Shown: positions 21,154 to 55,756, numbered from the stretch's first letter. The stretch is DNA of 64,000 nucleotides from Thalia democratica (GCA_965202585.1 OZ241826.1:93124001-93188000), one strand, 5' to 3'. Notes: a model not told the origin generated them from the letters alone. A program made the numbers and translations.

Positions 21154-22254
21154 ATGATTAAGTTTTCATTGAAGTTTGATGTTACTATTATCAAAGTGGC
21201 ATTAGTTTTTGTTGGTTCAGTTGCATTCTATAGTATTAATCGATGTGTCTCTAGTTTAGTTAGCTCTGCTGATAAAAACAAAAATGATGTATCGAATGCT
21301 GAAGACCCGTTACTTCCAAACGTGAGTGAAAATTGTGATGATGAAAAACCGATTACTATTACTAGGAAGAATGAAACTATGGCCCCAGAGGTCTACAAAC
21401 CTGAAACCGAAGTTGCTAGAGGGGCATTAAAAATTGACTCTTGTGGTATTTTAGAAAATAATTATAAACCTAAAATTGCAACACATAAAGTTAATACAGA
21501 AACACTTAATTCAGAAGAAGATTGTTTTCAAAACGTTGAACAAAGTTGTAGGGTTTCAGAAAGTGAAAAGAATAATTTTAACCAGCCCATTATAAACAAT
21601 ATTGATGTACCTGACTGTTTTCTAATAAATGGTTTGTCTGAACATTTTACTGAGTTACATGAAACAGTTGAACATTTCTATGTTTCAATACATGTGACGC
21701 ACTCCAACATAGAATTAGTTACAGCATCAGAGGACGACAAAACACACAATGCAGCTACTGCTGTGTTGTTTGAAGTATTTGACGATACAACTAAATGGGT
21801 GTCCTCTGCGGAAAAATATAAACTGATTACTGATTTTTACAATAGTCTTAGAAAAATATTAGATAAGTTATTCATTTATCCTCTTCAAAGTAGCCTTTCT
21901 AAAGAGCAAATTAAAAGTATTGTAGAGGGTATTCGAAGTATTTCTAAATATCTAAATTGGTACACAGTATTTCTCGGAAATTTGAAGGACTTAATCAACG
22001 GTATTTCAGCTGATCTAAAGCAAACTGAGATCGAGCTTAATAAAGTTGTAGGAGAATGGAACACGTATACTGACAAGTATAAATTCGCTGCAGCTAAATG
22101 TTTAGAAGCTCTTAACATTGAACATAAAATAGTTAGAATAAAAGATCTGTCTGAAAATTTTTCAACACTGTTTTCAAAAGCCAAAGAAGTTATTGTTTAT
22201 CTTTTAAAATATTTAGACTCAAACATCTCTGTTAACTTGAGCGGAAAAGATTGA
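21154..22254 (+). CDS. Uncharacterised 366-aa protein: N-terminal hydrophobic anchor, acidic linker, helical C-terminal domain
   Basis: Single intact ORF. Hydrophobic stretch VTIIKVALVFVGSVAFY near the N-terminus. The paralog at 40933-42026 conserves the C-terminal half best. Confidence 0.8.
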   Translation: MIKFSLKFDVTIIKVALVFVGSVAFYSINRCVSSLVSSADKNKNDVSNAEDPLLPNVSENCDDEKPITITRKNETMAPEVYKPETEVARGALKIDSCGILENNYKPKIATHKVNTETLNSEEDCFQNVEQSCRVSESEKNNFNQPIINNIDVPDCFLINGLSEHFTELHETVEHFYVSIHVTHSNIELVTASEDDKTHNAATAVLFEVFDDTTKWVSSAEKYKLITDFYNSLRKILDKLFIYPLQSSLSKEQIKSIVEGIRSISKYLNWYTVFLGNLKDLINGISADLKQTEIELNKVVGEWNTYTDKYKFAAAKCLEALNIEHKIVRIKDLSENFSTLFSKAKEVIVYLLKYLDSNISVNLSGKD

Positions 22255-25680: not shown

Positions 25681-28600
25681 GTTTTTTTAATCGTTCAATA
25701 ATCTATATATTTTGACTAAATAGCTTCAGATTAAATTATTCAACAAAATGTAGCTTTAAAATTACTACTAAGATCCGTTTTATCTTAGAAAAACATTTTT
25801 TATTCTTGTTTTTTAAAGTAACTATTTTTATTCTTGTAAAGTTTAAAAAACAAATAATATTGATGCAAGTTATAGTTTATTGGTTAAAAATAAAAAAAAA
25901 CGATGAAATCAGATTATTTTAGTTTGTCATTGTTCGGTATCAAAAACCAGCTGAATCTGAAAATAATATAAATTTTAAAATTTATAAAATATGCAATGAA
26001 CACTGCTGTATAACTTAGTTTTTTAGTATGTTTTATTTATTTTTTATTCTCAAATGTTGTATTAAATGTTAATTAAATTTTGAACAGCAATACTTTATCT
26101 TCTAATAAGAAAATTTTTATTAAAAAAGTTTGAAAATTTAAGATGAAAATACTCAAATATTTTGTCATTTAGTTTAACATAGTAACATTTATTAATTGTA
26201 GAACAAACTTACATAGTGTCTGGAACGAGCTTAAGCTTGATCTGTGTAAAAAATAAGTTTTTAAGTTACTTAGGTTAATTTAATTTTTATTAATTAAACA
26301 GCTAAGGCCTAAAACTTAATTAATTCAAACATAACTCATTAAGCTTTACTTAAAAAAAGCTTACTTGATTTTTTTCAAAATAAATGTTAGTAAACAAAAC
26401 TCATAAATGTTTATACTGTTTTGAAATGTGTCTTTTATTCGATTAATAAACAATTTGAAATACTTAAAAAAGCCTAGAACTAGTGGTTCTCAATAAAAAA
26501 GTTTCAGTAAAATAGATAAAAATAATTATGCTGCATTTCTTACGGCAGATCTCGGCAACCTTACATTATTAATTACCAAGTTTTTTGTAAAAATTTGTTC
26601 GCTGGCAGTATCCAATAAAATAGTGCATTTTTTTACCAAAACTACGCAATAATAAATCACTAGTAGTTACTAATTATCAAAATAAGAGCCTAACGCAGTT
26701 TTTAACACAAAATATTTTGTATTGATTTACTGAAGTAAATCTAAACTGAAAAGTACACTAAGTGCCGCAGTATTCATTTGGAAAAATATCTCAAAAAAAC
26801 TACTAACCGTTGCTTACGTCACCATAGTAACCATGGTGATAATACCCGTGGTGGTAACCGTGGCGATATCCGTATCCGTAGTAGTAATCTGATTAAAAAT
26901 TATTATATTTTTGTTAATTTTTGTTTAAACTCAATATTTTGTGTCGCTAATACTTTCTACTTTAAATATTGTAGTAAATATGTTTTGTACAAAACAAAAA
27001 CATATTTGTTCAAATGTATTAAAATTAGTACAAATTGATATTTTTTGTTACTTTACATTTAAACTTTAAATGTTTGCTATTAAAATAACTTCAACTTTTG
27101 AACAAAGTAACAAGTATATAAAATATTTTTAATTAGTTGTAAATTAAATGTATACATAAAGTAAAATACTGAATAAAGTCAATTTAAAAAGGAAATGGTT
27201 ATATTGTATCATAAAAACATCATAAATATGTTGTATCAAAAATATACTTATAATCATAAAAACAAACCATCATTGTTGTTGTTGTCACCATAGTAATGAT
27301 GATGGTAATAAGGATGTCCGTATCCGTATCCATAATAGTAATCTGTTTTTGAATAATAATATTAAATTAAATCTATACATAGCACCACTTGACATGGTTA
27401 ATATAAAACTAAGTCTAAACATGAAAAAAAAATGGCTTAATAATCTCTCAATAAAAATTTAAGCATCATTGTAAAACAATTATCTAAAGTGGTAAAAACA
27501 AACACTTTTTATTGTTATTGCCACTATCTTCCTAAAACACATCAAGTTATAAATTAACAATGAAATAATTATACATTTGTATAAAACTTTCTTTGCATTC
27601 TTTTACAACAAATATAGAACATTTTTGGCGAAAAATACGAATAAAGTAAGCTTTCTGAGTATGGCAAAATAACATTAAAAACTATCGAGGTATTTAAAAT
27701 ACTTAGCTAAAAAAATTTAAAGTAAGTTTTTAAATTCAGTGATCATATTGTATCAACAAGACATACTTATAACTATAATAACAAACCATCGTTGTTGTTG
27801 TTGTCACCATAGTAATGATGATGGTAATAAGGGTGTCCGTATCCGTATCCATAATAGTTTGAAGTTAAACGTTATTTAAACTTTATGTATTTTTTTTTAA
27901 TTTAGCTTAAACATAAAGCCTGTTTTAAAAAATGAAAAATATTCTAAATTGCAAAATTAAATAACGTTGAGCGATTATCAAAATCGATTCATATAATTCA
28001 CTTATAGGGTTTATGAAAGAATAGTTTATAAGTATAACTTATTTCAAAATTTCTACTAAATACAAAAAAGTTGTGGTTGTTATTCTATTATAGTTTTTTT
28101 AAATGAAGAACGAATGAGAGTACTAAAAAGTATTTCTAAAGTACAGTTTTTTTAATCTTCTTACAAGTAAAAACAGTTTAAAAAATAGTTAAAATATTGA
28201 AAAATTAACTTTCTAAAAAAAAAAATATTAATAAACGATAACAAAGACATTGTAAAATAAATTAAAATATAATTCATTTTAAAGCTTTATATCTTAAATG
28301 AGAATGATTGCAATATAAACGTAAAACTTTGTATTAAAAAGTTTTAAAATAAGTGCGCTTAACTTAATGAAACAAAAACAATTATATTTTTTCGAAATCT
28401 TGATAGTTTGGAAAATTATTAAAGTAAAGTTTACTAGTACACAGTTTTGAAAGTCCACGTAAGTATTTGGTTCATCAAACTATTGCAACTAACTTTAAAC
28501 CGTAAAATTTAAAAAGTTAGTTTTTAAACAGTCTCCCTCAGCTAATAGTGTGAGTGGTTCTAAAATGTCTTTTTAACTCACAGTCTTTTTGTTCTTCATC

Positions 28601-28797
28601 ACCGAGAATGGCATGACCGATTCCTCTAACAGCACCAATTGCGTGATGAGCAACTCCAGCTACTCCTCTGATGGCATGGTGAATAAGTCCGAAGAAAACT
28701 GTTTGTTTTCGTTAAATTTTAAAAAAGTAAAAGTTCTATGTCAACACGTAACTATATTTATAATAATTTAATAAATTATTTTTACCACTTTATAACT

Positions 28798-29004
28798 GGG
28801 GCACATTCAAATCCACCCGCGTTTAAAATATACCCAGTCAAATTCGAAAACCGCTTACCATCGAGGGTAAGGATTAGAGGTAACAGTAAAAGTGAAAAAT
28901 AAATTAAAAAAATTAAAAAATGTATAAAATAAATGAATGATTAAAGAAAATAAAAAATAAAAATTGGGTGGATTTTGAACGCGGGTGGATTTTGATAGTA
29001 TACC
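28798..29004. mobile_element. MITE with ~40-bp TIRs and telomere-like internal motif, intronic
   Basis: Left CAAATCCACCCGCGTTTAAAATATACCCA versus right TGGGTGGATTTTGAACGCGGGTGGATTTTGATAGTATACC. Interior GAGGGTAAGGATTAG. Shared with 48497-48716. Confidence 0.7.
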
Positions 29005-29950
29005 TTTAAACTAACACAAAGATTTCGCTTTTGTATAATAAAAGGATTTAGTTTAGTTTTAAGTTTAAAGAAATATTTAACTTTAACTAAAATTTAAAGA
29101 AAGAAATTATTTTATCATTAAAATTAATTTTAATACAACCAGTAAAACGAATTTACATAATTAAATTTAAGATAAAACTAAAAAAAAAGCAAATGTTATT
29201 AGGTTGTTTATAACTCACAGTCTCTGTTGTTGTCATTCACTTTAAGTCCGTCCTTTACAAGTTGGTCCATAACTTTGTTTGCCATATCATTAACTGTTTT
29301 AAGTTGTATAATATAAAATCTTTATTTGATTTTAAGTAGTGTAAAACAGTATGTTTGTTTCGTGTATAAGTTTGTTTATATTATAGTGTTTATAAAGCAG
29401 TTTAAATAAAAAAATATGGTAAAAGTAAGAAATTATATTTTGACTTAAATAAATTAGTCTTTATTTAAAATCTTAAGTTTAAAACAATAACTGCTTAATT
29501 TAGTAAAACTTATTTAACTGAATAATGTTCTTGAATTTTATAAAACTTGTCTGCAAACAGTAGCTTTTTATTTTATGTTTCTTCGAAAAATAAATGTTGA
29601 GATTAAGTTAGGAAAGATCTTGTTGTGTAACTTAGTTAGACATGTTATTAAATTTAGGATTTTAAGACTAAAATAATATTTTAGTTTAACTTACTTTCTT
29701 CATCACCGAGTATGGCATGACCGATTCCTCTAACAGCACCAATTGCGTGATGAGCAACTCCAGCTACTCCTCTGATAGCGTGGTGAATAAGTCCGAAGAT
29801 GACTAAATTTAAAAATAATTTCAAATACATTTAAAAAGAGTATGCTACAAAATAGCACATGTATTTACACAATTAATAACTTTTATAAAATCTCGATTAT
29901 TTACTTACAGGTTGAATTAATATGTAATAATTTTAAACTTTAAAAAAGCT

Positions 29951-30519
29951 AAATTTAAATAAATATCACAGATGTTCTTGTGCTAAAACTTTATTCCGAC
30001 TAACGGCGTTTCACTGCTCTCAAATAAATTTAAGAACAGATCTACGGAGTCTATAAAATGTTAACACACATTAGAAAAAAAGCAGAAAAAAGCATGTATA
30101 ATTATGTATAGTGTTTATCTAGGTAGTAACTATAAATGGACTTTATGGTTTAAAAACAAAGTTTGGGATATTTTAAGTAAGTTTTAAGTTAGTTCCCAAA
30201 CTTTGTTTTTAAACCATAAAGTCCATTTATAGTTACTACCCCAAACTTTGTTTTTAAACCATAAAGTCCATTTATAGTTACTACCTAGATAAACACTATA
30301 CCTAATTATACATGCTTTTTTCTGCTTTTTTTCTAATGTGTGTTAACATTTTATAGACTCCGTAGATCTGTTCTTAAATTTATTTGAGAGCAGTGAAACG
30401 CCGTTAGTCGGAATAAAGTTTTAGCACAAGAACATCTGTGATATACATTCCGATAAGCTTATCAGGATCTCCAGGATTTAACGCCTTATAACGTTACATC
30501 TTATAAATTTAAATAAATA
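29951..30519. mobile_element. Palindromic insertion with 15-bp target-site duplication (retroelement, possibly Penelope-like)
   Basis: AAATTTAAATAAATA at 29951-29965 and 30505-30519. The paralog near 49665 has a single diverged copy. Arms 29963-30168 and 30194-30444, with a 45-bp direct duplication in the right arm. Confidence 0.75.
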
Positions 30520-31267
30520 GATTTTTCAAATCTTAATTAAATTCAGACTTAAATAAAATCAAATTGTCTTTGAAGTTACCAAATTCTTTTTATATTGTTA
30601 ATTTCAAAATTTTTAAGTATGCAAAAATTTTGATAATTTTCGCCTAGCATACTTTTAAACTCATAAAAGAACTAAAACTTAAATCATATTGTTTAAACAG
30701 TTTAAAAACTTACAATCGTTTTTAGACTTGCTGTCTTTAGATTGGAAAATATCCTCTACCATTTGTTTAGCTAAAACTTGAGCGACTAAAAATGAAAATA
30801 CAATTAAAAAACATAAGCATTTTAATGTAAATAAACAGCTAGTATTGTGACTAAAATCAAATAAGTTAAACATAAACTGCTGAGTTTTTATAATTTTGTC
30901 ACTGTAGAAGTATTTTATCACTGACAATCTTTTTGTTCTTCATCTCCAAGTATGGCATGACCGAGTCCTCTAACAGCACCAATTGCGTGATGAGCAACTC
31001 AGGCTACTCCTCTGATAGCATGGTGAATAAGTCCGAAGAGAACTAATTATTAAATATTTAGTCAAGAAATTAACTAAACCTAAAAAAAGTATTGATGTGT
31101 TAATATATATATAAATGCTTGTAAAAACATAATAGCTAAAAGATGACACAAGTTTATTTAAAACTAACAATCTCTGTTTTCTTTGTTGTCTTCCATATTT
31201 GCCTGTTTAAGAAGTTCATCTGTCATTTCTTTAGCCAATTTGTTGCCTGATTTAAACTTAATTAAAT

Positions 31268-35927: not shown

Positions 35928-37573
35928 ATGCAACCGTTGAAAGATAGAGTGGAACTTTTTATAGAAAGTCATCCTAACTGTAGCAGTTTTTTATGTGGTC
36001 TCATCGAAAAGAGACAAGGCGAAATAAAGAATGAAACTGAGGATTTCGAAAACGGAAAGGTGCTTGAAAAGTCAATAAAGCTGTGTGGGTACGATGTGGG
36101 CAAGTTTCAAAAAATCAGCTCTTCCAGGATTCAAATGACCTGCTGAAGACCGATGATCCAGACTATGAGCTCCTTGAAAGTTCGATTAAAATCAAGGATG
36201 CTTCAGGCAACTCCAGCTTTGAACTGAACAGTAATAGCGAAGCTAAAAGTTTGAAGATATACAGAGTAGTGACAGCTGAAAAAACTTCAACAGGATCGAG
36301 TAGTTCAGATAGCACTCCGAAAACTCTTTTGCTTCATGGGACGAAAGCACGAAACGTAGAAGGAATCCTAAAGACCGGGTTCAATCCTTCTGAAAAAGGG
36401 CTTTTTGGACCCGGAGTGTATCTGACTGGCAGCTTCAGCGAAGCGTGCATCTACGCCGAGAGTTTTGCCACGGAAAGCAACATGACCAAAAGAATCAGAT
36501 ACTTTTTTGTTAACGGTGTGGAAATGTCTGAGAATGGTTCACAAGCTCTTCAAGGTATAAAATCTTTTCAAAAATATCAAAATTCAGATCCATCCGTGCA
36601 AGTTTTTGACTGTTCGACTAACAATGAAGATTCCGCACCAGACTTGTTTGATAGTCAACATAGAAAAATTTTGCACGGCAGTTTTCATAATACTGAACAA
36701 AAAATAGTGTTGGCTCATCACAGTTTAGTAGTTCCCGCTTATCTAAACGAGATTGAACTAAAAACCCATGTGGCCGAAATTGTTAATGGAACATTTTACA
36801 ACGGTGGTTTAAAATTGGGCAGATACTTAAAGGAAGGCGATTTTTATCAAAAAAGAAGCAGTATTCAAGATGAAGTTTCAGAATTTTCTTTTGATATGAT
36901 AGCAAAAGAGCTGGAAAAAGAAGTTAAAAGAAATTATTATGCAAAAATTGACAGGTTAAGTTCTCGATTAGAAGAAGATACCAACAGTATCATTAATCAG
37001 CTTTCTTTTAAATTTGGTAGCATTTTCGAATTGAAAAGTGACGAAAAAAGAAAATTCAGTACAGAGCTTGTGCAAAAAGGCAGTGATGACTACAACTTTA
37101 TTTCATGTTCATTCAGTTCTGCGAACGCATTTAAAATCAAACATCTGTATAGAGTCAACCCTACTGACAAAAACGAATTAGTTAGGTTGGCACATAAGTA
37201 CCTTTACCTAAACCTAGTGGAAAAAGATCAAGTAAAAAGCGTTTTGACAAGCGGTTATCCAGGAGCCAAGAAATCCGCAGGTATAAAAGGTGCGAAGTTA
37301 TATTTCGCTGCAACATATATAAATTATCGCAATAAAGAAGACTTCAGTTATTTTGAGGTAGATGGCACAGTAAAAAAGCTGCTGTTTGTGTTTGTGTCTG
37401 CCACTCAAGACGGTAATAACTACAATAATTTGGACATGAAAAAAGTTCAAGTTGTCGAGGATAGCAGAAAAAGTTTAGCCGTTAAAGGGTTGTTTGAACA
37501 TGAATACCTCGAAACTTTTATCAGTCTCGCTAATTTATTTCCAGCCTACTTAATTGTTTTTGAGTTAGAATAA
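35928..37573 (+). pseudogene. Tandem PARP-like gene, copy 3, frameshifted
   Basis: ATG at 35928. Relative to copies 1 and 2 there is a 1-nt insertion (about 36106-36116) and an 8-nt deletion (ACAAACTC, after 36136), net -1 frame. This explains the split ORFs 35928-36146 and 36083-37573. Confidence 0.8.
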
Positions 37574-40932: not shown

Positions 40933-42026
40933 ATGATCAAGTTTACATTGAAGCTTGATGTTAGCATTAGCAAAGTGGCATTAGTTTTTGTTGGTTCAGT
41001 AGCATGTCATAATATTTGTCGATGTGTCTCTAGTTTAATGTCTCTAGTTTAATTAGCTCTACTGATGATAATAACAAAAATGCTGAGGACTCGTTGCTTA
41101 CAAACAACAGTAAAAATTTTGATGAAGAAAAACCGTTCATTATTACTAGGAAGAATGAAACTTGGGCTCCAGAGATCTACAAACCTGAAACCGAAGTTTC
41201 TAGAAGAGCATTAGAAGTTGGCTCTTGTGAGGTTTTAGAAGGTTATTTTAAAAGTATTGAAATGCAGAAAGTTAAATTAGAAACGTTTAAGTCAGAGTTA
41301 GGTTGTTTTCAAAATGTTGAACAAAATTGTATGGTTTCGGAAAGTAAACAGAATATTTCTAACGAGCCTATTGTAAATAATATTGAATGTTTTAAAATAA
41401 ATGATATATCTGTACATCTTACTCAACTACATGAAATAGTTGAACATTTCTATATTTCAATACATGTTACGCACTCCAAAATAGAATTAATTACAGCATC
41501 AGAGGACGACAAAACACACAATGCAGCTACTGCTGTGTTGTTTAAAGTATTTGACGATACAACTAAATGGGTGTCCTCTGCGGATAAATATAAACTGATT
41601 ACTGATTTTTACAATAGTCTTAGAAAAATATTAGATAAGTTATTCATTTATCCTCTTCAAAGTAGCCTTTCACTAGAGCAAATTAAAAGTATTGTAGGGG
41701 GTATTCGAAGTATTTCTAAATATCTACATTGGTATTCAATATTTCTCAGCAATTTGAAGGATTTAATCAACTGTATTTCAGCTGATCTAAAGCAAACTAA
41801 GACCGAGCTTAATAAAGTTGTAGGAGAATGGAACAAGTATATTGATAAGTATAAGTTCGCTGCAGCTAAATGCTTAGAAGCTCTTAACACTGCACATAAA
41901 ATAGTTAGAATGAAGGATCTGTCTGAAAATTTCTCAACACTGTTTTCAAAAACCAAAGAAGTTATTGTTTATCTTTTAAAATATTTAGACTCAAACATCT
42001 CTGTCAACTTGAGCGGAAAAAATTGA
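40933..42026 (+). pseudogene. Frameshifted paralog of the 21154-22254 gene
   Basis: ATG at 40933 is homologous to 21154. The tandem 14-bp duplication TGTCTCTAGTTTAA (41025-41038, 41039-41052) shifts the frame into a TAA. The rest is open to 42026. Confidence 0.8.
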
Positions 42027-44147: not shown

Positions 44148-44493
44148 TTTAATTCAAAGTTGTCAAAGTACTCAATTTAAGTTTAGTTTATCGAACAGAA
44201 AAATAAAATGCAACAATACAACTATCACATCACAGTAGATACGACTACTGTGATGCGATAGTTGTATTGTTGCAGTCTACTGTGATGTGATAGTTGTATT
44301 GTTGAAATCTACTGTGATGTGATAGTTGTATTGTTGCAGTCTACTGTGATGTGATAGTTGTACCGTTTCGTTCTACTGTGATGGATAGTTGTGTTGTTGA
44401 GATCTACTGTGATGTGGTAGTTGTGTTGTTGCCTTCTATTTTGTCGTTTATAAACTAAACTTAATTTGACTACTGTGATTACTTTAATTTAAA
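44148..44493. repeat. Foldback/MITE-like element with a 32-bp tandem array (6 units)
   Basis: Units at 44245, 44277, 44309, 44341, 44373 and 44404. Paralog of 24472-24881. Confidence 0.85.
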
Positions 44494-46603
44494 TTTTGTA
44501 TTAGTTGAGTACTTATAAATCTTTTAAAATTGATTTTCGGTAATTTTTTATGTCATATAAAGATTTTATAACGAAAGAAATAATGCAAGTTAAGATCATA
44601 CAAAAAAAAATTATTTGTAAAAACTTGTAAATGTGTAATATAACGTTCTTATAATAAAAAATAGTTTTATTAAAATTATTAGTAATATTGACTGTTTAAA
44701 AAATATTTTTGCATCAATCGAAGAATCTGACAACTTATAAATATTTTTGCTCGTCTACTTTTTACAGATTAAATTATTCGATTAAATTTATCTTTAGTTA
44801 TTTGATTAAGCGTTGTTTTTCATAGTTAGTTTTGTTTGTTTCTAGCACATTGCTAAGTTTAATTTGTTTTTGTTTGCGACAACTAATTATCTGAGCCATA
44901 ATTTGCAATTTATAACGAAGCACTTCATCGAAAAAAATGTTCAATATATATATATATACACCTACTCCTTTATTTAGCTGTAAAGTTTTTATTAACCTCG
45001 ATTACACAATTAAAAAGTTCTTATAAAAAATATTTCTGATAAGAAAACAATATCTATTAACTTTTTTCTCGGCAACATCTATTTTATGTTAGACACTTAT
45101 TTTTAAATTGAATACAACTGTATAAAAATTTTATATTAACGTTTTAGTTTTAAGTTTTTTCGATCACTTTATGTTTTGACTGATAAGCTATAAATTTAAT
45201 TATTCAACAAAACTTAGTTTTAAAACTGCTATAAAAATCCGTTTTCTCTTGGTTTTAAACAATTTTTTTGCTTTGGTTCTTAGAAAGTAATTATTTTATT
45301 CTTATGTAGTTAAAAAAACAAACTTTTTTGATGCAAGTTATAGTTTATTGATAAAAAAAACAAAACGATGAAATCATGTTGTTAGGTATTGTAATCCAGT
45401 TGAACCTGTAAAATATAAAAAAAATTGTAAAGCTAACAAAAATATGCATTGTTACTGCTGTATAACTCAGTTTTTCAGTCTGTTCTACTTATTATTTTAT
45501 TCTTGAATATGGTCCTAAGGTAATTTTGAACAGCAATACTTAAACTTCTAATAAGAAATTTTATATTAAAAATGTTTTAGAATTTTTAATGAAAGTATTT
45601 AAATATTTTTCAATAAGTTTAACATACTAATTTATTTAATGATATATTTGGATGTATTTACATCTTAACTCTTCAATATTATTCTTATGTAAAAAACTAA
45701 TCTCCATTTTTAAATTTCTTAACTATTTACCAAAAGTTTAGTAATACAATTTGGTATCTAAACTGGTAAGTTTAAAACTTACATAAACTATACTGTCCAA
45801 ATCTAAACTATTTTACATTCATAATGAGTAAAGTAAGCAATCTTTATCAGACGATTTATAAACAAATAGCAACAATTTTGGACCTTTACTAAATTCACGT
45901 ATTCAACATTTTTAAAACACAAAGAAAAGTTTAATAAGTATTTAAGCTCGGTACCTTTTCTAAGAGTTTTTTTCAAATGTTTTAATAAGTTATTAGCAAT
46001 TATTAGCTGTAATTAAATAAACTTACGTAGTGTTTGGGACGAGCTTAAGCTTGATCTGTGCAAAAAATAAGTAATTGTAAGTTTAAGTTAGTTTATTAAT
46101 TAATTAATAAGCAATGGTCTAAAACTAAGTGATCTCAAACACTTGCTTAACTTAAAAAAAGCTTACTATATTTTTGTAAAAAATAATATTAGTTTATAAA
46201 ACTTATAAATGTTTATACTTTTATAAAATATGTCTTTTAATCGATTAATAAACAATTTGGAATACTTAAAAAAGCGTAGAACTAGTGGTATTCAATAAAA
46301 AAGTCTCAGTAAAATAGATAAAAATAAATGTGCTACATTTATTACGGCAGATCTCGGCAACCTTACATTCTTAATTATAAAGTTTTTTGTAAAAAAATGT
46401 TCGCTGGCTGTATCCAATAAAATAGTGCATATTTTTACCAAAACTACGCAATAATAGATCACTAGCAGTTACTAAATATCAAAATAAGAGCTTAACGCAG
46501 TTTTTACCACAAAATGTTTTTATTAATTTAGCAAAAACTAATACAGCTGAAAAGTACATTAAGTGCCGAAGTATTCATTTGAAAATATATCTCAAAAAAA
46601 CTA

Positions 46604-46689
46604 CTAACCGTTGCTCACGTCACCATAGTAACCATGGTGATAATACCCGTGGTGGTAACCATGGTGATATCCGTATCCATAGTAGTAAT
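46604..46689 (-). CDS. Polyprotein exon 20: (D)YYYGYGYHHGYHHGYYHHGYYG-DVSN(G*)
   Basis: Acceptor ATAATCAG. Ends at TAG 46604-46606, or at donor GTTAGT after 46609. Confidence 0.8.
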
Positions 46690-49600
46690 CTGATTATTAA
46701 TTATTATATTTTTGTGAAGTTTTGTTTAAACTCAATATTTTGTGTCGCTAATACTTTCTACTTTAAATATTGTAGTAAATATGTTTTATACAAAACAAAA
46801 ACATATTTGTTTAAATGTACTAAAATTAATATAAATTAATATTTGCTGTTACTTTACATTTAAACTTTAAATATTTGCTATTATAATAACTTCAACTTTT
46901 GAACAAAGTAATAAGTATATAAATATTTTTAAAAAGTTGTAAATTAAATGTATACATAAAGTAATAATAATAAATAAAGTCAATTTTAAAGGAAATGATC
47001 TTATAGTAATCTAAAATAAACTTATAAATATAAAAATAAACCATCATTATTGTTGTTGTCACCATAGTAATGATGATGGTAATAAGGGTGTCCGTATCCA
47101 TATCCATAATAGTAATCTGATTATTGATAAAAAAAGTAAATTAAATCTATACATAGCACCACTTGACATGGTTAATATAAAACTTAAATATTCAAAAATT
47201 AGCTTGCTAATATTTCAATAAAATTTAAGCATCACTATACAACAAATATCTAACATTATTATACAAACATTTATTATTATTATTGGCACTACCTAAACCA
47301 TAAACCAATTTAGTTATAAGTTATTATGATGTTTAATATACATTCGTATGAAACTTTCATTGTATTCTATTACAACACAATATATATAGAACGTTCTTTG
47401 CAAAAACAACAAAAAAAAAAAGTAAGCTTTCTTACTATGGCAAAATAACATTGAATTTTATTGAAGTATTTAAGTACTTAGCTAACAAAATTCAAACGTA
47501 AGTACTACAGGCAGTGATTATATAGTAATCTAAAATAAACTTCTTATTATAAAAACAAACCATCATTGTTGTTGTTGTCACCATAGTAATGATGATGGTA
47601 ATAAGGGTGTCCGTATCCGTATCCATAATAGTCTGAATTTAAAAATTAGTTAAACTTTCTTTTTTCATCTAGCTTAAATATAAAGCTTGTTTTCATAAAT
47701 TAAAATTTTTCTAAATAGCAAAATTAAATAACGTTTAGCGATTATCGAAATAGATTCATTTAGTTTACTTATAGCGTTTATAAAAGAATACTTTTATAAG
47801 TATAACTTATTTCTAAACTTCTACAAAATACAAAAAGTTTTAAGCTTAAAATCTTTTTGAAAAATAAGTTGTGGATGCTATTTTGTTAAAGCTTTCCCAA
47901 TTAAACAACGAACAAGAGTACTAAAAAATACTTTTAAAGTAGAGTTTTGTTAATCTTTTTACAAGTAAATAAAGTTAAAAAAATAGTTAAAATATTGAAA
48001 AATTAAACTACTAAAAATAATATTATTAAACAATTACAAAGTCACTGTGTAATAAACTAAAATTAATACATTTTAAAGCTGTTCATCTCAAATGAGAACA
48101 AGTTCAATAAAAATGTAATATTTAGTACTAAAATTTTTTAAATAAGTAAATATAAATATAATTATTTAATAAATAACTTAATAAAACAAAAATAAATACA
48201 ATTTTTTTGAAATTTTGATAGTTTGGAAATTTCAAAAGTTAGTTTTTAACAGTCTCCCTCAGCTAATAAGGGGTTCTAAAATGTCTTTTTAACTCACAGT
48301 CTTTTTGTTGTTCATCACCGAGTATGGCATGACCGATTCCTCTAACAGCACCAATTGCGTGATGAGCAACTCCAGCTACTCCTCTGATAGCGTGGTGAAT
48401 AAGTCCGAAGAAAACTGAAAAAAAGTAAAAGTTCTCAGTCAACACGTAACTTAAATTTTAATGAAATAAGATATTCTTTTTACTACTTTTAAAACTGGGA
48501 CACGTTAAAAATTCACCCGCGTTTAAAATCCACCCAATCAAATTTGAGAACCGCTTACCGATCGAGGGTAAGGGTTAGGGGTAACAGTAATAGCGAAAAA
48601 TATTTTAAAAAATGCAAAAGCATATAAAGTAAATTAACAAATGAAGAAAATATAAAAACATTGGGTTGATTTTAATTGGGTGGGTTTTGAACGCAGGTGG
48701 ATTTTGATAGAATACCTTTAAACTAACACAAAGTTTTCGCTTTTGTATAATATAAGGGTCTAATTTAGTTTTAAATTAAACAAATATATTTAGCTTTGTT
48801 TTAATACTAAAATAAAGAAACTATTCTATCATTAAATATATTTTAATATTACCTTTGGAACTAATTTACATAGTTAAATTTAAGATAAAACTAAAAAAAA
48901 AAGCAAATGTAGTTAGGTTGTTTATAACTCACAGTCTCTGTTGTTGTCATTTACTTTAAGTCCGTCCTTTACAAGTTGGTCCATAACTTTGTTTGCCATA
49001 TCATTAACTGTTTTAAATTTTATAATAAAAAAACTTTATTTGATTTTAAGTAGTGTAAAACAGTATGTTTGTTTCGTGTATAAGTTTGTTTATATTATAG
49101 TGTTTATAAAGCAGTTTAAAGAAAAAATCTAGTAAAAGTAAAAAATCTATGTTTTTTACTTAAATAACTTAGTCTTTATTTTGAATTTTAAGTTTAGAAC
49201 AAAAACTGCTTAATTTAGTAAAAATTATTAAACTGAACAATGTTCTTGAATTTTATAAAACTTGTCTGCAAACAGTAGCTTTTTATTTTATGATTCTTTG
49301 AAAAAAAATGTTGAGATTAAGTTAGGAAGTATCTTGTTGTGTAACTTAGTTAGACATGTTATTAACTTTGGGTTTTCAACACTAAAATAATATTTTAGTT
49401 TAACTTACTTTCTTCATCACCGAGTATGGCATGACCGAGTCCTCTAACAGCACCAATTGCGTGATGAGCGACTCCTGCTACTCCTCTGATAGCATGGTGA
49501 ATAAGTCCGAAGATGACTAAATTTAAAAATAATTTCAAATACATTTAAAAAGAGTATTCTACAAAATAGCACATGTATTTACACAATTAATAACTTTTAT

Positions 49601-52600
49601 AAAATCTCGATTTTTTGCTTACAGGTTAAATAAATATGTTATTATTTTAAACTTTTAAAAAGCTAAATTTAAATAATTAGATCTTTCAAATCTTAATTTA
49701 ACTCAGACTTAAATTTAATTAATTGTTTTTGAAGTTACTAAATTCTTTTTATATTGTTAATTTCAAACATTTTTAAGTATGCAAAAATTTTGATAATATT
49801 TGCCTAGCATACTTTTAAACTCATAAAAGAACTAAAACTTAAACCATATTGTTTAAACAGCTTAAAAACTTACAATCGTTTTTAGCCTTGCTGTCTTTAG
49901 ATTGGAAAATATCCTCTACCATTTGTTTGGCTAAAACTTGAGCGACTAAAATAGAAAATACAATTAAAAAACATAAAAATTTTAGTGTAAATAAACAGCT
50001 AGTATTGCGACTAAAATCAGATAAGTTAAACATAAACTGCTGAGTTTTAATAATTTTTTCACTGTAGAAGTACTTTATAACTAACAATCTTTTTGTTCTT
50101 TATCTCCGAGTATGGCATGGCCGAGTCCTCTTACAGCACCAATTGCGTGATGAGCAACTCCAGCTACTCCTCTGATAGCGTGGTGAATAAGTCCGAAGAG
50201 AACTAATTATTAAATATTTAGTCAAGAAATAAAATAAACTCAAAACAATTTAGGTATTAACATAAGAAAAAAAAATACTTTATTTAAAAAACATAATAAC
50301 TAAATTATGAAACAAGTTTATTAAAAACTAACAATCTCTGTTTTCTTTGTTGTCTTCCATATTTGCCTGTTTAAGAAGTTCATCTGTCATTTCTTTAGCC
50401 AATTTGTTGCCTGTTTTAAACTTAATTTAATTTTTGTGCTAACAAAAAGTGCATATCTTAAAAATGAATTAGTATTTTTTACTTTTTCAGCCAGAGAAAA
50501 AAATATCCTAAGATTTTTGATAAAATATTAAATATATAAGAATAAGTATATCTATTTTGATGTAAATTTTAGTTTTCAAGAGCAAGTATCTTAATTTGTG
50601 TCTTTAACTGCACTTGTTGCATAGGAAACTCATAATACTTCGAATAAACTACTCAAGAAAATGTATAATCTATTCGTAAGTATAAGATCTATTCATGAGG
50701 CATGATGTCTTGAACTACTCTAATGATAGATTTTTAAATATAAACATTTTTACTGAGTTTTCAAATTAAAATTTGTTATAGCTTACTTTCTTCATCTCCG
50801 AGTATGGCATGACCGAGTCCTCTAACAGCACCGATTGCGTGATGAGCAACTCCAGCTACTCCTCTGATAGCGTGGTGAATAATTCCAAAGATGACTAATC
50901 ATTTTATGTTTTTTATAACCACTTATGGCTAAAAATTATGTTTTTAATGAATAAAACAACACTCAAATTTTTTTCATTCCAATATTTTTCGTCAAATTCT
51001 CTTCAGGGAAACTACAATTGAAACAATAAAATAAAACACAACAAGTATTTATACAAAATAATGTTTTTTACAAACTAATTAACTGATCAATTAAGTAAAC
51101 ATAAATGTAATCAACGAAAATGTAATCAACAAAGCTTTAAAAATCAACACAAAATGGTCTTAACTAAATAAGGCTAGGGTGTAATCAAATTTTTTCTTTT
51201 TGCATAAATTTGGTTTTTTTAAATGTATTAAAATGGCTTCAAGTCTAATTAATTCCAATGTATTTGAACATTGTCGCATTACACTGAAATTAGATAATGC
51301 AAACTTTTTTCCACAACTTGGATTATTCACAAGGTGTTCTGCTATCGCAGATTTTTTTTATTGCATTTTTGACTGCAATACTCTTTTCGTCTTTTTCGTC
51401 TTTGATATATGAAGTGATACACTTGGGAACATAATCCTTTATTCTAGTTGTGAGGTATGTTCCCAAGTGTATCACTTCATATATTAAAGACGAAAAAGAC
51501 GAAAAGAGTATTGCAGTCAAAAATGCAGTAAAAAAATCTGCGATAGCAGAACACCTTGTGAATAATCCAAGTTGTGGAAAAAAGTTTGCATTATCTAATT
51601 TCAGTGTAATGCGACAATGTTCAAATACATTGGAATTAATTAGATTTGAAGCCATTTTAATACATTTAAAAAAACCAAATTTATGCAAAAAGAAAAAATT
51701 TGATTACACCCTAGCCTTATTTAGTTAAGACCATTTTGTGTTGATTTTTAAAGCTTTGTTGATTACATTTTCATTAATTACATTTATGTTTACTTAATTG
51801 ATCAGTTAATTAGTTTGTAAAAAACATTATTTTGTATATATACTTGTTGTGTTTTATTTTATTGTTTCAATTGTAGTTTCCCAGAAGAGAATTTGACGAA
51901 ATATATATTTGAATGAAAAAAATTTGAGTGTTCTTTTATTCATTAAAAAGTTATAAAATAAAGTCTGATGTTTAAATTATTAAAAATTATATTATTTTGA
52001 ATCTATGAACTAAATAGCGCAATTAACACTAATTAAATTTTTCTAAATGCACAACAAGTTGTAAAAGAAGAAGTGAAATTGAGTGGTTTAAAATGTTTGT
52101 TAAACTAACAATCTTTCTGTTGTTCGTCACCAAGTATGGCATGACCGAGTCCTCTAACAGCACCAATTGCGTGATGAGCAACTCCAGCTACTCCTCTGAT
52201 GGCATGGTGAATAATTCCGAAGATGACTGAAATTAAAAATAACACACTCTCGTAATTAACCCGTCAAATGAATTATAATAAAATAAATAGTGTACACTCT
52301 TTTAAATATTTGTTATAAGTTAGGGTTTGAAAACGTACAATTCTCAGGCTGGCTCGCCAATAGAAATATCAGGCTTGCCTGGTATTTATAAGTTTAAAAT
52401 GACAGGTGCATAATATTTAAAATTGAGCTTTTTGATAAGACTCTGTTTGAAAATGATTTTATACATTATTATTACTTAGCAGTTCTTGTAAAAATATGTT
52501 TCTAATTATAGTTTTAAATTTCAAGTTGTTTTTGAACTTTTTAGAGTTTTTTAACATATACACGGCCTGATAAGATTTAAAATCTGGTAAAGATTTTTTG

Positions 52601-55600
52601 GTAAAACATTTTTTTAAATTGATGCCTGCATACTTAAACATTTGCTTGTTCCTACATTAAATTTTAAACTTCACGCAGTTTTTAGATTTCATCTGTTCTA
52701 AGTTCAAAAAGATAAGCTTCAAATTTATATTTATAGTAAATACAAAACTGAAACCGTCAATAAAAAGCATTAACCGTAAACCAAATTTATCTAGCTTAAT
52801 TTTAGATTAACCAAAAAATCAGATATTATCAATTTGTTAATAAACTCACAGTCTCTGTTGTTGTCATTTACTTCAAGTCCATCTTTTACAAGCTCGTCCA
52901 TAACTTTGTTTGCCATATCATTAACTGTTTTAAATGGTTTAATTAATAAATGTTAATTTAAATTTAGTTATTGTAAAACAAAATATTTTTGTTTTGTATA
53001 TGAGTTTGATAGTGTAAAGGTGTTTACAAATTTTTTTATAATATATAGACTTAAACCTATTTAAATAATTGAAAAGCTATTTTACCTACTTAAATACCTT
53101 AGTCTTAAAATAAAATCTCAAGTTTAGGGCAATTAAGTGTTTGAACCAGTATAGGCTTCTAGTAAAACAAAAATTGAAAGACTAAAGTTTATTCTCTCAC
53201 ATATGTCTAAAAGATAATTATAAAGAACTTGTTAAAAAAATCACATTTTGTTACGTAGTTATATATGATATTAACTTAAGGATTTTAAGAAGTAACTACA
53301 AAATTCTTCTTGCTTAACTTACTATCTTCATCACCAAGTATGGCATGACCAAGTCCTCTAACAGCACCAATTGCGTGATGAGCAACTCCAGCTACTCCTC
53401 TGATAGCGTGGTGAATAAGTCCAAAGATAACTAAATTTAAATTAAAGTTTATATTATTTTAAAATAAAACATTCAACTTAGAGATTATGTATATCAGAGA
53501 ATAAACTTATCACAGTCTAATAAATGCTGACTTCATTATAAATTGATATTTATTTAACTACGAAATGCTTTACTTACAGTAGTTTTCAAATACTTTAAAC
53601 ACGAAAAAAAAAATGTATATGCCTATCATTTTATTTAAGTTTATTATCGCAGTAAAACTTTATATATAGTTTTAAAACTTACAATCGTTTTTAACTTTGC
53701 TGTCTTTAGCTTGGCGAATGTCCTCTACCATTTGTTTAGCCAAAACTTGAGCGACTAAAAAACATATTTATTTCAAACAGATAATCAAAAATAAAATTTT
53801 TCAATTAAAAGTTTGTGTCATAACTAAAATCAGATTAGTTGAGCAAAATTACCGAGTTTTTATCATTAATAACTATAAACTATTGTATAACTAACAATCT
53901 TTTTGTTCTTTATCTCCAAGTATGGCATGACCGAGTCCTCTAACAGCACCAATTGCGTGATGAGCAACTCCAGCTACTCCTCTGATAGCGTGGTGAATAA
54001 TTCCAAAGATAACTGTTTATTAAATATTTAGTCAAGAAATAAACTAAATCCAAAATGGTTAAGGTATTGACATATTAATAAAAAAACAACTTTGTACTTC
54101 GAAAAAATCAGTAGTTATGTTATAAAATAAATCAAATACTAACAATCTCTGTTTTCTTTGTTGTCTTCCATATTTGTTTGTTTAAGAAGTTCATCTGTCA
54201 TTTCATTAGCCAATTTGTTGCCTGTTTTAAACGTAGTTTTAATTTGTGTGCTAACAAAATTATACATATTTTAAAGTTGGATAAGCATTTTATGTCTGTT
54301 AATCTAACTAAATCAAATATTAGTAGCTATTTAGCAAAAAAAAAAGTTTTTTGATAAGGAATTATGAATAAAAAAATAATCTTATTTTTGTGTCTTTAAT
54401 AATAAACTTTGTATTAGAAACTAACATTTTTTGTAATAATCTACTAAACTAAAAATTCAATTTATATTTAAGTGTAAACTCTGCATTAAAGCTATCACTA
54501 ATTAAACATTTATGAAGTTTTACATTCAAATAAAAATATTTTTTTATTATTGTATTAACTTATAGTTTGTTATTATGAATTTACTTACTTTCTTCATCTC
54601 CAAGTATGGCATGACCAAGTCCTCTAACAGCACCGATTGCGTGATGAGCAACTCCAGCTACTCCTCTGATAGCGTGGTGAATAATTCCGAAGAGAACTGT
54701 TTATTTTCGTTAAATTTTAAAAACCGATATAATTTTAAAGTTTTTTATTCAAATAGAACTTAATACTGTTTACTAGATGATTTTATAAAAAAATATATAA
54801 ATTTAATGATAGTATTAACTAAACTGATAAGCTGTTTTAACTGATATAATCTATGAACTTTGCTTTAGTTTTTATCTTTTTTGAAGCTAAAATTATATTA
54901 TCATCCTGCAAAACTTGTTAAGGTTTTTTTTTATATGTCAACAAACGGTTGTCAACAAAAAATTAAATCTTAGACTATAAAGATTGTTAACTTTGTATTA
55001 CGTTTAACTTACTTAATTTAATTTTTTGTTAACTGAATATAAACATATTTGAAAGTATTAATAGTATTTTTATTAATTAAAACTAACAGTCTTTGTTTTC
55101 TTTTGTGTTTCCGTCTTTGATTAAATCGTTTGCCATCATTTTTGCAACTTTAAATAATGTTTAGTTTTAAATGCTTTATTTATTTACTTTTAAGTAAACT
55201 ATAAAAAAAAAAAGAATATTTTTGATAAAAGGTAAACTTTTTATCGACGTTTTACTATTTTAATACAATTCTTATAACTAGTTTGATTTATAAGTGCGTA
55301 TAAAGCAAGTATCTTCGATATAAAAAAAAAAGATTTTATCCCAGTTAAAACTTTGTTTATATATTTCAAACTGAAATAAATCTAATAAAATTTTGATACT
55401 ATGTATACTATCAATTTTATTTTTAGTTTTATTTAAAAAGAGGTAAAAATTTGTAACGTAAACTTTTTCTTCAATTTTAAGCAAATTATTAAAAATTTCT
55501 AACCATCAGCGCTGTCCATAGACTTAACTGTAAAATTAATTTATTTAAATCTTTAATATAAAAATAAATACCCAATTAATGGTAGGAAAGTAATCAGAAA

Positions 55601-55756
55601 TTTAGTTGTTACTAAAAACTAAACACTAAAACTGTAGTCGTATCCTTATTAGTAGTAAAAACTTTTAAATCGTTATATATAATCAAACAAACCAGCTTTA
55701 GACATTGAAGTTGCTACAAAAGCAAAAGAAAGAGCGACAACCAAACAGAACTTCAT
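46604..55756 (-). CDS. Multi-exon secreted polyprotein precursor of eight His-rich amphipathic (clavanin-like, putative antimicrobial) peptides and three Tyr/Gly/His-rich peptides
   Basis: Twenty exons, all with AG/GT boundaries and all introns phase 1, join into one open frame of about 572 aa starting MKFCLVVALSFAFVATSMSKA. Differences among repeated exons are almost all synonymous in this frame. The exact 3' end (GGT TAG at 46604 versus a further spliced exon) is uncertain. Confidence 0.88.
47042..47116 (-). CDS. Polyprotein exon 19: (D)YYYGYGYGHPYYHHHYYG-DNNNND
   Basis: 75 nt, acceptor ATAATCAG, donor GTTTAT, phase 1-1. Confidence 0.8.
47561..47632 (-). CDS. Polyprotein exon 18: (Y)YYGYGYGHPYYHHHYYG-DNNNND
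   Basis: 72 nt, acceptor AATTCAG, donor GTTTGT, phase 1-1. Confidence 0.8.
48251..48262 (-). CDS. Polyprotein exon 17: putative 12-nt microexon (S)EGD
   Basis: TATTAG-CTGAGGGAGACT-GTTAAA, identical 12-mer in copy A (28530-28541). The upstream intron would be only 35 nt. Confidence 0.45.
48298..48414 (-). CDS. Polyprotein exon 16: peptide 8 (F)FFGLIHHAIRGVAGVAHHAIGAVRGIGHAILG-DEQQKD
   Basis: 117 nt, acceptor TTTTTCAG, donor GTGAGT. Confidence 0.88.
48497..48716. mobile_element. MITE with TIRs and GGGTTAGGG core, intronic (paralog of 28798-29004)
   Basis: AATTCACCCGCGTTTAAAATCCACCCAAT versus TTGGGTGGGTTTTGAACGCAGGTGGATTTTGATAGAATACC. Confidence 0.7.
48933..49007 (-). CDS. Polyprotein exon 15: spacer (I)NDMANKVMDQLVKDGLKVNDNNRD
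   Basis: 75 nt, acceptor AAAACAG, donor GTGAGT. Confidence 0.85.
49409..49516 (-). CDS. Polyprotein exon 14: peptide 7 (F)IFGLIHHAIRGVAGVAHHAIGAVRGLGHAILG-DEE
   Basis: 108 nt, acceptor AATTTAG, donor GTAAGT. Confidence 0.88.
49874..49945 (-). CDS. Polyprotein exon 13: spacer (F)AQVLAKQMVEDIFQSKDSKAKND
   Basis: 72 nt, acceptor ATTTTAG, donor GTAAGT. Confidence 0.85.
50086..50202 (-). CDS. Polyprotein exon 12: peptide 6 (F)LFGLIHHAIRGVAGVAHHAIGAVRGLGHAILG-DKEQKD
   Basis: 117 nt, acceptor TAATTAG, donor GTTAGT. Confidence 0.88.
50333..50410 (-). CDS. Polyprotein exon 11: spacer (S)NKLAKEMTDELLKQANMEDNKENRD
   Basis: 78 nt, acceptor AAAACAG, donor GTTAGT. Confidence 0.85.
50787..50894 (-). CDS. 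Polyprotein exon 10: peptide 5 (F)IFGIIHHAIRGVAGVAHHAIGAVRGLGHAILG-DEE
   Basis: 108 nt, acceptor TGATTAG, donor GTAAGC. Confidence 0.88.
50941..51949. mobile_element. Penelope-like retroelement 3' fragment as a ~1-kb inverted repeat (GIY-YIG C-terminus plus hammerhead-like motif)
   Basis: Arms 50941-51433 and 51456-51949 with a 22-nt spacer. Translation LTTRIKDYVPKC...SAIAEHLVNNPSC...NFSVM...ELIRLEAILIHLKKPNLC resembles the C-terminal part of the Penelope GIY-YIG endonuclease. Confidence 0.75.
52110..52226 (-). CDS. Polyprotein exon 9: peptide 4 (F)IFGIIHHAIRGVAGVAHHAIGAVRGLGHAILG-DEQQKD
   Basis: 117 nt, acceptor ATTTCAG, donor GTTAGT. Confidence 0.88.
52850..52924 (-). CDS. Polyprotein exon 8: spacer (I)NDMANKVMDELVKDGLEVNDNNRD
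   Basis: 75 nt, acceptor AAAACAG, donor GTGAGT. Confidence 0.85.
53323..53430 (-). CDS. Polyprotein exon 7: peptide 3 (F)IFGLIHHAIRGVAGVAHHAIGAVRGLGHAILG-DED
   Basis: 108 nt, acceptor AATTTAG, donor GTAAGT. Confidence 0.88.
53683..53754 (-). CDS. Polyprotein exon 6: spacer (F)AQVLAKQMVEDIRQAKDSKVKND
   Basis: 72 nt, acceptor TTTTTAG, donor GTAAGT. Confidence 0.85.
53896..54012 (-). CDS. Polyprotein exon 5: peptide 2 (F)IFGIIHHAIRGVAGVAHHAIGAVRGLGHAILG-DKEQKD
   Basis: 117 nt, acceptor TAAACAG, donor GTTAGT. Confidence 0.88.
54144..54221 (-). CDS. Polyprotein exon 4: spacer (S)NKLANEMTDELLKQTNMEDNKENRD
   Basis: 78 nt, acceptor AAAACAG, donor GTTAGT. Confidence 0.85.
54589..54696 (-). CDS. 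Polyprotein exon 3: peptide 1 (F)LFGIIHHAIRGVAGVAHHAIGAVRGLGHAILG-DEE
   Basis: 108 nt, acceptor TAAACAG, donor GTAAGT. Confidence 0.88.
55088..55147 (-). CDS. Polyprotein exon 2: pro-region (V)AKMMANDLIKDGNTKENKD
   Basis: 60 nt, acceptor TTAAAG, donor GTTAGT. Resembles the spacer exons. Confidence 0.8.
55693..55756 (-). CDS. Polyprotein exon 1: signal peptide MKFCLVVALSFAFVATSMSKA
   Basis: ATG at 55756, basic-hydrophobic-small residue pattern, donor GTTTGT, phase 1. Confidence 0.82.

Follow-up and report, generated by a model that had tools for sequence, protein, structure and literature searches.

What is encoded by the short GC-richer islands scattered along the minus strand of an otherwise AT-rich stretch of the Thalia democratica genome? 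The stretch, the 64-kb window analysed here (C1:93.124–93.188 Mb of an 802-Mb assembly; GC ~24%), had been read in an earlier note as holding a polyprotein gene of 20 exons, each with AG...GT borders and separated by phase-1 introns, that the open reading frame (ORF) track does not show. By scanning the minus strand for open intervals with AG and GT borders in phase 1 and assembling them, we recovered all 20 at the places given there: from 55756 down to 46604, short exons of 24–117 nt join into one reading frame. Although missed by the ORF track, the gene is real: RNA covers the exons and is zero in the introns. We consider it probable that this tunicate gene encodes a secreted polyprecursor from which host-defence peptides, antimicrobial or cytolytic, would be released, a reading in which cleavage, amidation and antimicrobial action are the parts that we infer.

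All 19 introns between these exons are GT..AG and all 19 are in phase 1; exon GC (0.31–0.48) stands clear of intron GC (0.15–0.26), and the exon model is far beyond chance expectation. Because every exon is symmetric, any exon skip keeps the frame. The coding sequence as drawn in the earlier note comprises 1731 nt, or 576 residues plus a stop, so that the single frame holds while the ~572 residues claimed for it become 576 in the model and 578 with the corrected 3′ end described below. The proposed order of modules is borne out by the exon model, with two cargo chemistries in one frame: a signal peptide and two pro-piece exons are followed by two four-peptide cassettes and three Tyr/Gly/His exons, each cassette running peptide, spacer 1, peptide, spacer 2, peptide, spacer 3, peptide, with the peptides 32 residues long and acidic spacers among those between them. 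As described, the tails include GDEE, GDKEQKD and GDEQQKD, and there is also one GDED.

Twenty RNA runs contain words of the gene, mostly marine or seawater metatranscriptomes from several studies, with one organism-labelled transcriptome among them; six of the 20 were mapped onto the locus. In these six, X1, X2, X6, X11 and X12 among them, depth falls in exon bins and is zero in intron bins, which serves as a control against DNA carry-over. The predicted borders coincide to the nucleotide with joints or loose ends for 1→2, 2→3, 4→5, 11→12, 12→13, 13→14, 15→16, 16→17, 19→20 and 20→21, and junctions of the classes 6→7, 8→9 and 9→10 appear in variant transcripts. Most borders are used as predicted for the 19 junctions, while neither 10→11 nor 17→18 is among the RNA joints listed. 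The gene is spliced and transcribed. The RNA records are short unitigs, 95–99% alike and drawn from a repeated gene family, with alleles and paralogues mixed; joints 13→18 and 11→16 in RNA contigs may reflect exon skipping, paralogues, or misplacement among near-identical exons. Among these short unitigs no single transcript with all 11 cargos was seen, and that all 11 share one mRNA, as the earlier note proposed, is something we infer. Multi-peptide mRNAs are nevertheless made in this family, since one relative (P0021) is a complete precursor: its signal peptide, four 32-mers, further cargo and stop codon all lie on a single intron-less cDNA contig of 1339 nt.

The RNA also revised the end of the gene, which had been placed at a stop at 46604. 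At 46609, where GTTAGT supplies the donor GT, RNA contigs part from the genome and share one continuation, which matches 46055–46030 with three mismatches, where no such match is expected by chance. Splicing from 46609 to this exon 21 changes the C-terminus from ...SNG and a stop to ...GDVSNDQA and a stop, and gives a protein of 578 residues; four metatranscriptome proteins (P0007, P0025, P0028 and P0035) all end GDVSNDQA. An X12 contig carries 115 extra letters, equal to the 29 nt of exon 21 plus 86 nt, and a further 3′ untranslated region (UTR) exon with an AATAAA is likely near 45405–45320. This putative exon 22 is partly conserved in a paralogue; conservation does not discriminate for either exon, because the duplication shared with the paralogues takes in the entire 3′ flank. 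Some RNA contigs hold an extra exon after exon 19, whose consensus is absent from the window; we therefore assign it to a paralogue or another species. Also in the 3′ flank, at 44230–44440 in the minus-strand reading, lies a short tandem array of ~33-nt units (...caacaatacaactatcacatcacagtagat...) that ends in its own inverted copy.

Within the gene, the two cassettes are 89–96% identical in their exons and 54–74% in their introns. Over its eight copies, the 96-nt coding unit of the peptide is variable at 14 sites; 11 of these are third codon positions, second positions are invariant, and nonsynonymous divergence (dN, 0.021) is far below synonymous divergence (dS, 0.19): the peptide is under purifying selection. 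Residues vary only at positions 2, 5 and 27, by Ile/Leu/Phe swaps, and seven of the eight copies differ solely by Ile/Leu swaps; seven of the eight predicted products are isobaric. The conserved sequence is hydrophobic (mean H 0.49) and Gly/Ala-rich, with His at positions 7/8, 18/19 and 29, an 11-residue period. Calculated at 100 degrees, its hydrophobic moment is 0.416, a value attained by none of 5000 shuffles (0.156 ± 0.075), all five His and both Arg fall within 240–360 degrees of the helical wheel, and AlphaFold predicts a helix across the 32-mer (pLDDT 70–83) and a disordered Tyr/His tail. As modelled, the 32-mer is a strongly amphipathic helix with all its His and Arg on one face. Its computed charge is +3.1 at pH 7.5 and +7.3 at pH 5.5, while spacers 1 and 3 carry charges of −6 to −7.

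All 11 cargos share one frame, with Asp before and Gly-Asp after. All eight 32-mers end ...AIL-G-D(E/K)..., and the Tyr/Gly/His modules are framed Asp...Tyr-Tyr-Gly-Asp, a pattern conserved even in distant relatives; family-wide, Asp precedes 68 of 77 peptide starts. The relatives P0021, P0037 and P0020 hold unrelated cargo modules in the same Asp...Gly-Asp frame, which suggests a precursor scaffold open to cargo of different kinds. The cargo borders read ...K/R-(N)-D before F and ...L-G before D, with no KR or RR, and neither dibasic nor monobasic convertase sites were found at any of them. Genes for copper type II monooxygenases (PHM/DBH-type) are present in the genome, at C4:70.15 Mb and C4:55.04 Mb.

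The gene belongs to an expanded family. At least 62 peptide exons lie in the assembly in several clusters (C1 at 93.05, 93.15–93.18, 93.52 and 93.54 Mb; C6 at 81.02 and 81.07 Mb), and two small contigs with peptide exons look like alternates. The 8+3 layout recurs in a second gene of the genome, and a further gene is built 4+3; copy number among paralogues varies (4, 8, ~9), and paralogues are headed by the same signal-peptide exon as exon 1. In the C6 genes the peptide ends differently and one copy has diverged strongly, and between C1 and C6 paralogues the peptides are 76–100% identical (one outlier, 37%) and the spacers 59–72%. The spliced leader of Ciona type (16 nt; sequence confirmed in PMC1488885) with a GT directly after it occurs in 358 genomic copies against none for a reversed control, which identifies the host genome as that of a tunicate. 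How often the gene turns up in RNA from the open ocean suggests a pelagic tunicate, presumably a thaliacean. The 16-mer lies partly in regular arrays (for example L016 and L017), with the C26 copies ~15.1 kb apart apart from one gap of 16.6 kb; these arrays are probably spliced-leader RNA genes.

A partial paralogue lies in the window itself, at 25860–31250 on the minus strand, with equivalents of exons 12–22 at 88–100% identity (three peptide exons, three spacers, three Tyr/Gly/His exons and the 3′ exons). No signal-peptide exon was found for it, and its peptide exon at 30927–31040 is interrupted by a TGA in frame; this paralogue is best taken as a probable pseudogene, truncated in origin and left by a ~19-kb segmental duplication. 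Intron 10 of the main gene (1215 nt) is enlarged by a near-perfect ~1-kb palindrome (50941–51949; arms 96–98% complementary, with a 22-nt centre), whereas its counterpart in paralogues C1a and C1b, with the same peptide-to-peptide arrangement, measures ~170 nt. The palindrome reaches a depth of ~20,000 in DNA runs against ~300 in its flanks, which makes it a high-copy foldback or an element like a miniature inverted-repeat transposable element (MITE).

Beyond the genome, a profile of the eight peptide exons found 20 matches among 1.84 billion proteins, and a word-based search with P0007 found 35, all of them unnamed. They come from ocean metatranscriptome catalogues, ENA assemblies, JGI and one EukProt entry; as to the database search suggested earlier, then, unnamed metatranscriptome proteins answered it, and neither a Pfam family nor a named protein did. 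P0007 (118 residues) has one peptide and one Tyr/His module, and in the distant relative P0020 His-helix modules alternate with Tyr/His modules. Short catalogue transcripts such as P0007 and P0025 may be either exon-skipped forms or assemblies collapsed across repeats. Three relatives (P0021, P0023 and P0037) carry extra cargo, for example a ~38-residue Pro/Arg/His-rich module ending CP(V/T)HHG and a short FGVMGHHATVFG module. For P0016, which bears the EukProt label Bolivina argentea, we set aside a foraminiferal origin and take carry-over from another organism as likely. The best Pfam match, DUF5429 on P0021, scores 24.5 bits against a cut-off of 27, and the weak matches (SGP, DUF5429, Synuclein and others) were discarded as compositional. 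Peptide words of 6–8 residues had no match in the literature text searched.

By function, the nearest known system is that of the clavanins and clavaspirin. Clavanins A–E and clavaspirin of Styela clava are 23-residue, His-rich, C-amidated α-helical antimicrobial peptides (AMPs) of haemocytes, and the clavanin precursor has a C-terminal tail containing Tyr and His; P0007, with its single peptide and Tyr/His module, resembles such a prepropeptide. Shared with the clavanins are the tunicate host, a His-rich amphipathic helix with pH-dependent (here computed) charge, and an opening Phe/Leu-rich F-L-x-x-I-I-H-H motif. In both, the amide-donor Gly (predicted here) leads straight into an acidic stretch that lacks basic residues, the clavanin side of this comparison coming in part from a table in PMC10608444. 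Against this, the 32-mer is longer (32 residues rather than 23) and consists of three 11-residue units, the residue before the peptide is Asp here and Lys there, and in place of one peptide per ~80-residue prepropeptide there are eight copies in 578 residues, with one exon per module. Mature clavanin A is identical to the 32-mer at 8 of 18 ungapped positions (z = 3.2), which is only suggestive, and the similarity of clavaspirin is not significant (z = 0.8). The GDDQQD start of the clavanin tail, with which the earlier note compared the tails here, and Gly-extended clavanin A had no match in the literature text searched. Of the likeness to clavanins drawn at the outset, the Gly with its acidic tail and the tunicate host hold good, while sequence homology is not established; common descent is possible but unproven.

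By architecture, the nearest systems are multi-copy AMP polyprecursors, and the earlier note overstated its case in not recognising the arrangement from described precursors: tandem multi-copy AMP precursors are known for apidaecin in the honeybee, magainin/PGLa and bombinin in frogs, Ib-AMP in Impatiens and baramicin in Drosophila. Like these, the present gene has one signal peptide, tandem peptides with spacers, a copy number that varies among paralogues and a conserved motif at every cargo border. Precursors of the apidaecin, magainin, bombinin, Ib-AMP and baramicin types are cut at dibasic, furin-type or dipeptidyl-peptidase sites, whereas here all borders are Asp or Gly-Asp; each module moreover has its own symmetric phase-1 exon, and a second, Tyr/Gly/His class of cargo is appended. 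In low-complexity composition the Tyr/Gly/His modules are similar to AMPs rich in Gly/Tyr or Gly/His (the NLP/CNC peptides of C. elegans, plant shepherins) and to the tunicate DOPA peptides tunichromes and plicatamide, with no sequence relation, and they run to 17–21 residues where tunichromes have 3–5. Plicatamide, a His/Phe peptide, has a modified Tyr as its last residue, and tunichromes are regarded as fragments of peptides rich in Tyr or dihydroxyphenylalanine (DOPA) (PMC3039461, PMC5465252); the biosynthetic origin of both is described as largely unknown (PMC3039461).

How might such a precursor work? Building on the established gene structure, splicing and transcription, the family expansion, the purifying selection, the amphipathicity and the conserved framing, we propose that the signal peptide would take the 578-residue protein into the secretory pathway, where the anionic spacers would keep the modules apart and probably offset the positive charge of the cargo in storage. 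Cutting at the Asp sites would then leave Gly at the C-terminus, for conversion to an amide. The computed monoisotopic masses are 3278.889 and 3312.874 Da for the amidated 32-mers and 2300.949 and 2755.121 Da for Tyr/His modules. The released 32-mers would be pH-switchable, membrane-active peptides, the rise in charge on His protonation predicting a pH-dependent action on membranes such as the clavanins of Styela show (PMC10608444, PMC5465252). Tunicate blood cells make His-rich, amidated, helical AMPs (PMC10608444, PMC5465252).

Several points weigh against this reading. The protein lacks the dibasic convertase sites of a conventional precursor, and the copper monooxygenase matches may be DBH-like instead of PAM. 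Homology to clavanin or clavaspirin is not demonstrable, the profile search of 1.84 billion proteins gave no named relative, Pfam gave no family above its cut-off and none for a window exon, and the look-alike offered by a protein language model, Bombinin at 0.81, falls below the level at which it would be more than a lead. Short RNA contigs that mix alleles and paralogues leave full exon connectivity short of proof, and the joints 13→18 and 11→16 hint at shorter products or misplacement.

The gene could also encode a secreted protein that is never cut, a structural, metal-binding or tunic- or mucus-associated protein whose helices bind lipid or metal and whose Tyr/His tail cross-links after oxidation. 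An 11-residue His period is typical of surface-binding helices, the Tyr/Gly/His composition of the tail, predicted to be disordered, resembles cross-linking and metal-binding materials, and both the lack of classical convertase sites and the very high RNA signal fit such a protein, as does the presence in tunicate blood cells of DOPA proteins that cross-link the tunic (PMC5465252). We nonetheless hold this to be unlikely: a strict Asp...Gly-Asp frame, drawn even round the unrelated cargo of P0021, P0037 and P0020, is hard to explain without processing, the spacers evolve faster than the cargo, and copy number varies freely among paralogues, as it does in polyprecursors. If the protein is cut, its products might still be aimed not at bacteria but, by the same membrane-helix mechanism, at eukaryotes, as cytolytic or deterrent peptides against predators, parasites, fouling organisms or ingested prey. 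The hydrophobic, long, Gly/Ala-rich 32-mer would favour insertion into neutral membranes, clavaspirin of Styela is markedly haemolytic (PMC10608444), and a gelatinous planktonic animal would presumably have few other defences; on the other side, pH-switchable His peptides are best known as antimicrobials, and although the present data do not separate the two readings we rate a eukaryotic target as quite unlikely.

Many copies of an amidated peptide between acidic spacers are also the usual build of a neuropeptide precursor, and a signalling peptide or hormone has to be considered. We regard this as very improbable, given cargo borders free of dibasic or monobasic convertase sites, a cargo that is a 32-residue amphipathic helix of membrane type, a large and fast-expanding family of at least 62 peptide exons, and a very high RNA signal in whole-plankton samples. 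The host-defence polyprecursor remains the reading we prefer, and its exons and neighbouring elements are listed in Table 1.

Table 1. Positions in the window of the exons and associated elements of the proposed polyprecursor gene.
Feature	Position	Strand	Evidence
Putative TATA box TATAAAAA	55815..55822	-	59–66 nt upstream of ATG; sequence reading; presumed promoter role
Exon 1: ATG and 21-residue signal peptide (MK, hydrophobic core, SKA), phase-1 end	55693..55756	-	RNA depth; joint 55527→55693 (intron 1)
Exon 2: pro-piece KSMDSAD	55504..55527	-	Loose ends 55693 and 55504, the 1→2 and 2→3 junctions in variant transcripts
Exon 3: pro-piece, end KENKD	55088..55147	-	Model; P0025 has identical 19 residues, then peptide
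Exon 4: peptide copy 1, G, DEE	54589..54696	-	4→5 junction from both sides (loose ends 54221, 54588)
Exon 5: acidic spacer type 1	54144..54221	-	Model; exon-only RNA depth
Exon 6: peptide copy 2, G, DKEQKD	53896..54012	-	Model; RNA depth
Exon 7: spacer type 2	53683..53754	-	Acceptor 53754 used in RNA (loose end)
Exon 8: peptide copy 3, G, DED	53323..53430	-	RNA depth; P0002 shows spacer 2, then peptide
Exon 9: acidic spacer type 3	52850..52924	-	Both borders used in RNA (loose ends 52924, 52850)
Exon 10: peptide copy 4, G, DEQQKD; closes cassette 1	52110..52226	-	Model; RNA depth
Exon 11: peptide copy 5, G, DEE; opens cassette 2	50787..50894	-	11→12 joint 50409→50787; loose ends 50410
Exon 12: spacer type 1	50333..50410	-	Run X11 pieces, 0 mismatches; loose end 50333 shows peptide exon next
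Exon 13: peptide copy 6, G, DKEQKD	50086..50202	-	Joint 49945→50086 (intron 13)
Exon 14: spacer type 2	49874..49945	-	X6 contig spans 49874–49945, 0 mismatches, flanks both sides
Exon 15: peptide copy 7, G, DEE	49409..49516	-	Joint 49007→49409 (intron 15)
Exon 16: spacer type 3	48933..49007	-	X12 contig, 0 mismatches; loose end 48933, start of exon 17
Exon 17: peptide copy 8 (FFFG..RGIG variant), G, DEQQKD	48298..48414	-	RNA depth; P0025 shows peptide, then Tyr-rich module
Exon 18: Tyr/Gly/His module 1 (17 residues, G, DNNNND)	47561..47632	-	Acceptor 47632 used in RNA (joint 47632→50086)
Exon 19: Tyr/Gly/His module 2	47042..47116	-	Joint 46689→47042 (intron 19) in three X1 and one X12 contigs
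Exon 20: Tyr/Gly/His module 3 (21 residues, G, DVSN)	46609..46689	-	Donor 46609 used; 5 reads leave genome there, one consensus
Exon 21: finishes Asp, then Gln-Ala-stop; starts 3′ UTR	46027..46055	-	RNA loose-end match; canonical AG and GT flanks
Putative exon 22: 3′ UTR, AATAAA 45349–45344	45320..45405	-	Sequence reading; contig-length fit

At the 5′ end of the gene, one RNA contig extends upstream to 55766. Beside and between the peptide genes, the plus strand of the window holds long intron-less ORFs of ~37% GC (10738–12261, 14595–15905 and 36083–37573; also 6002–7672, 21154–22254 and 41094–42026). Three plus-strand ORFs match the PARP catalytic domain (E values 1e-10 to 6e-12) and the rest had no Pfam match; together they may form a tandem PARP-like gene family beside an immune-type gene cluster.

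New here are the family itself, its construction from up to eight copies with one exon per module, the framing of cargo by Asp and Gly-Asp and the conserved Tyr/Gly/His modules. To our knowledge host-defence peptides are known only from a handful of benthic ascidians, and we found no description of any from pelagic tunicates; the locus now points to a large, unannotated and apparently heavily transcribed family in an animal frequent in ocean metatranscriptomes. Ocean gene catalogues hold relatives without name or taxon, which the locus ties to a tunicate genome. The family offers a natural series of pH-switchable 32-mers and a clean case of polyprecursor growth by symmetric-exon duplication, and its Asp...Gly-Asp cargo-framing rule points to a dedicated processing protease, for which legumain-type or other Asp-specific enzymes are candidates.

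A further possibility, which we put forward as a long shot, concerns the second cargo: the Tyr/Gly/His modules could be ribosomal precursors of DOPA or trihydroxyphenylalanine (TOPA) peptides of the tunichrome or plicatamide type, co-encoded and co-secreted with the His-rich peptides through an Asp-directed processing unlike that of convertases. If that were true, one gene would equip the blood-cell defence of tunicates with a killing arm as well as one for oxidative cross-linking or wound sealing, and the origin of tunichromes would become testable.

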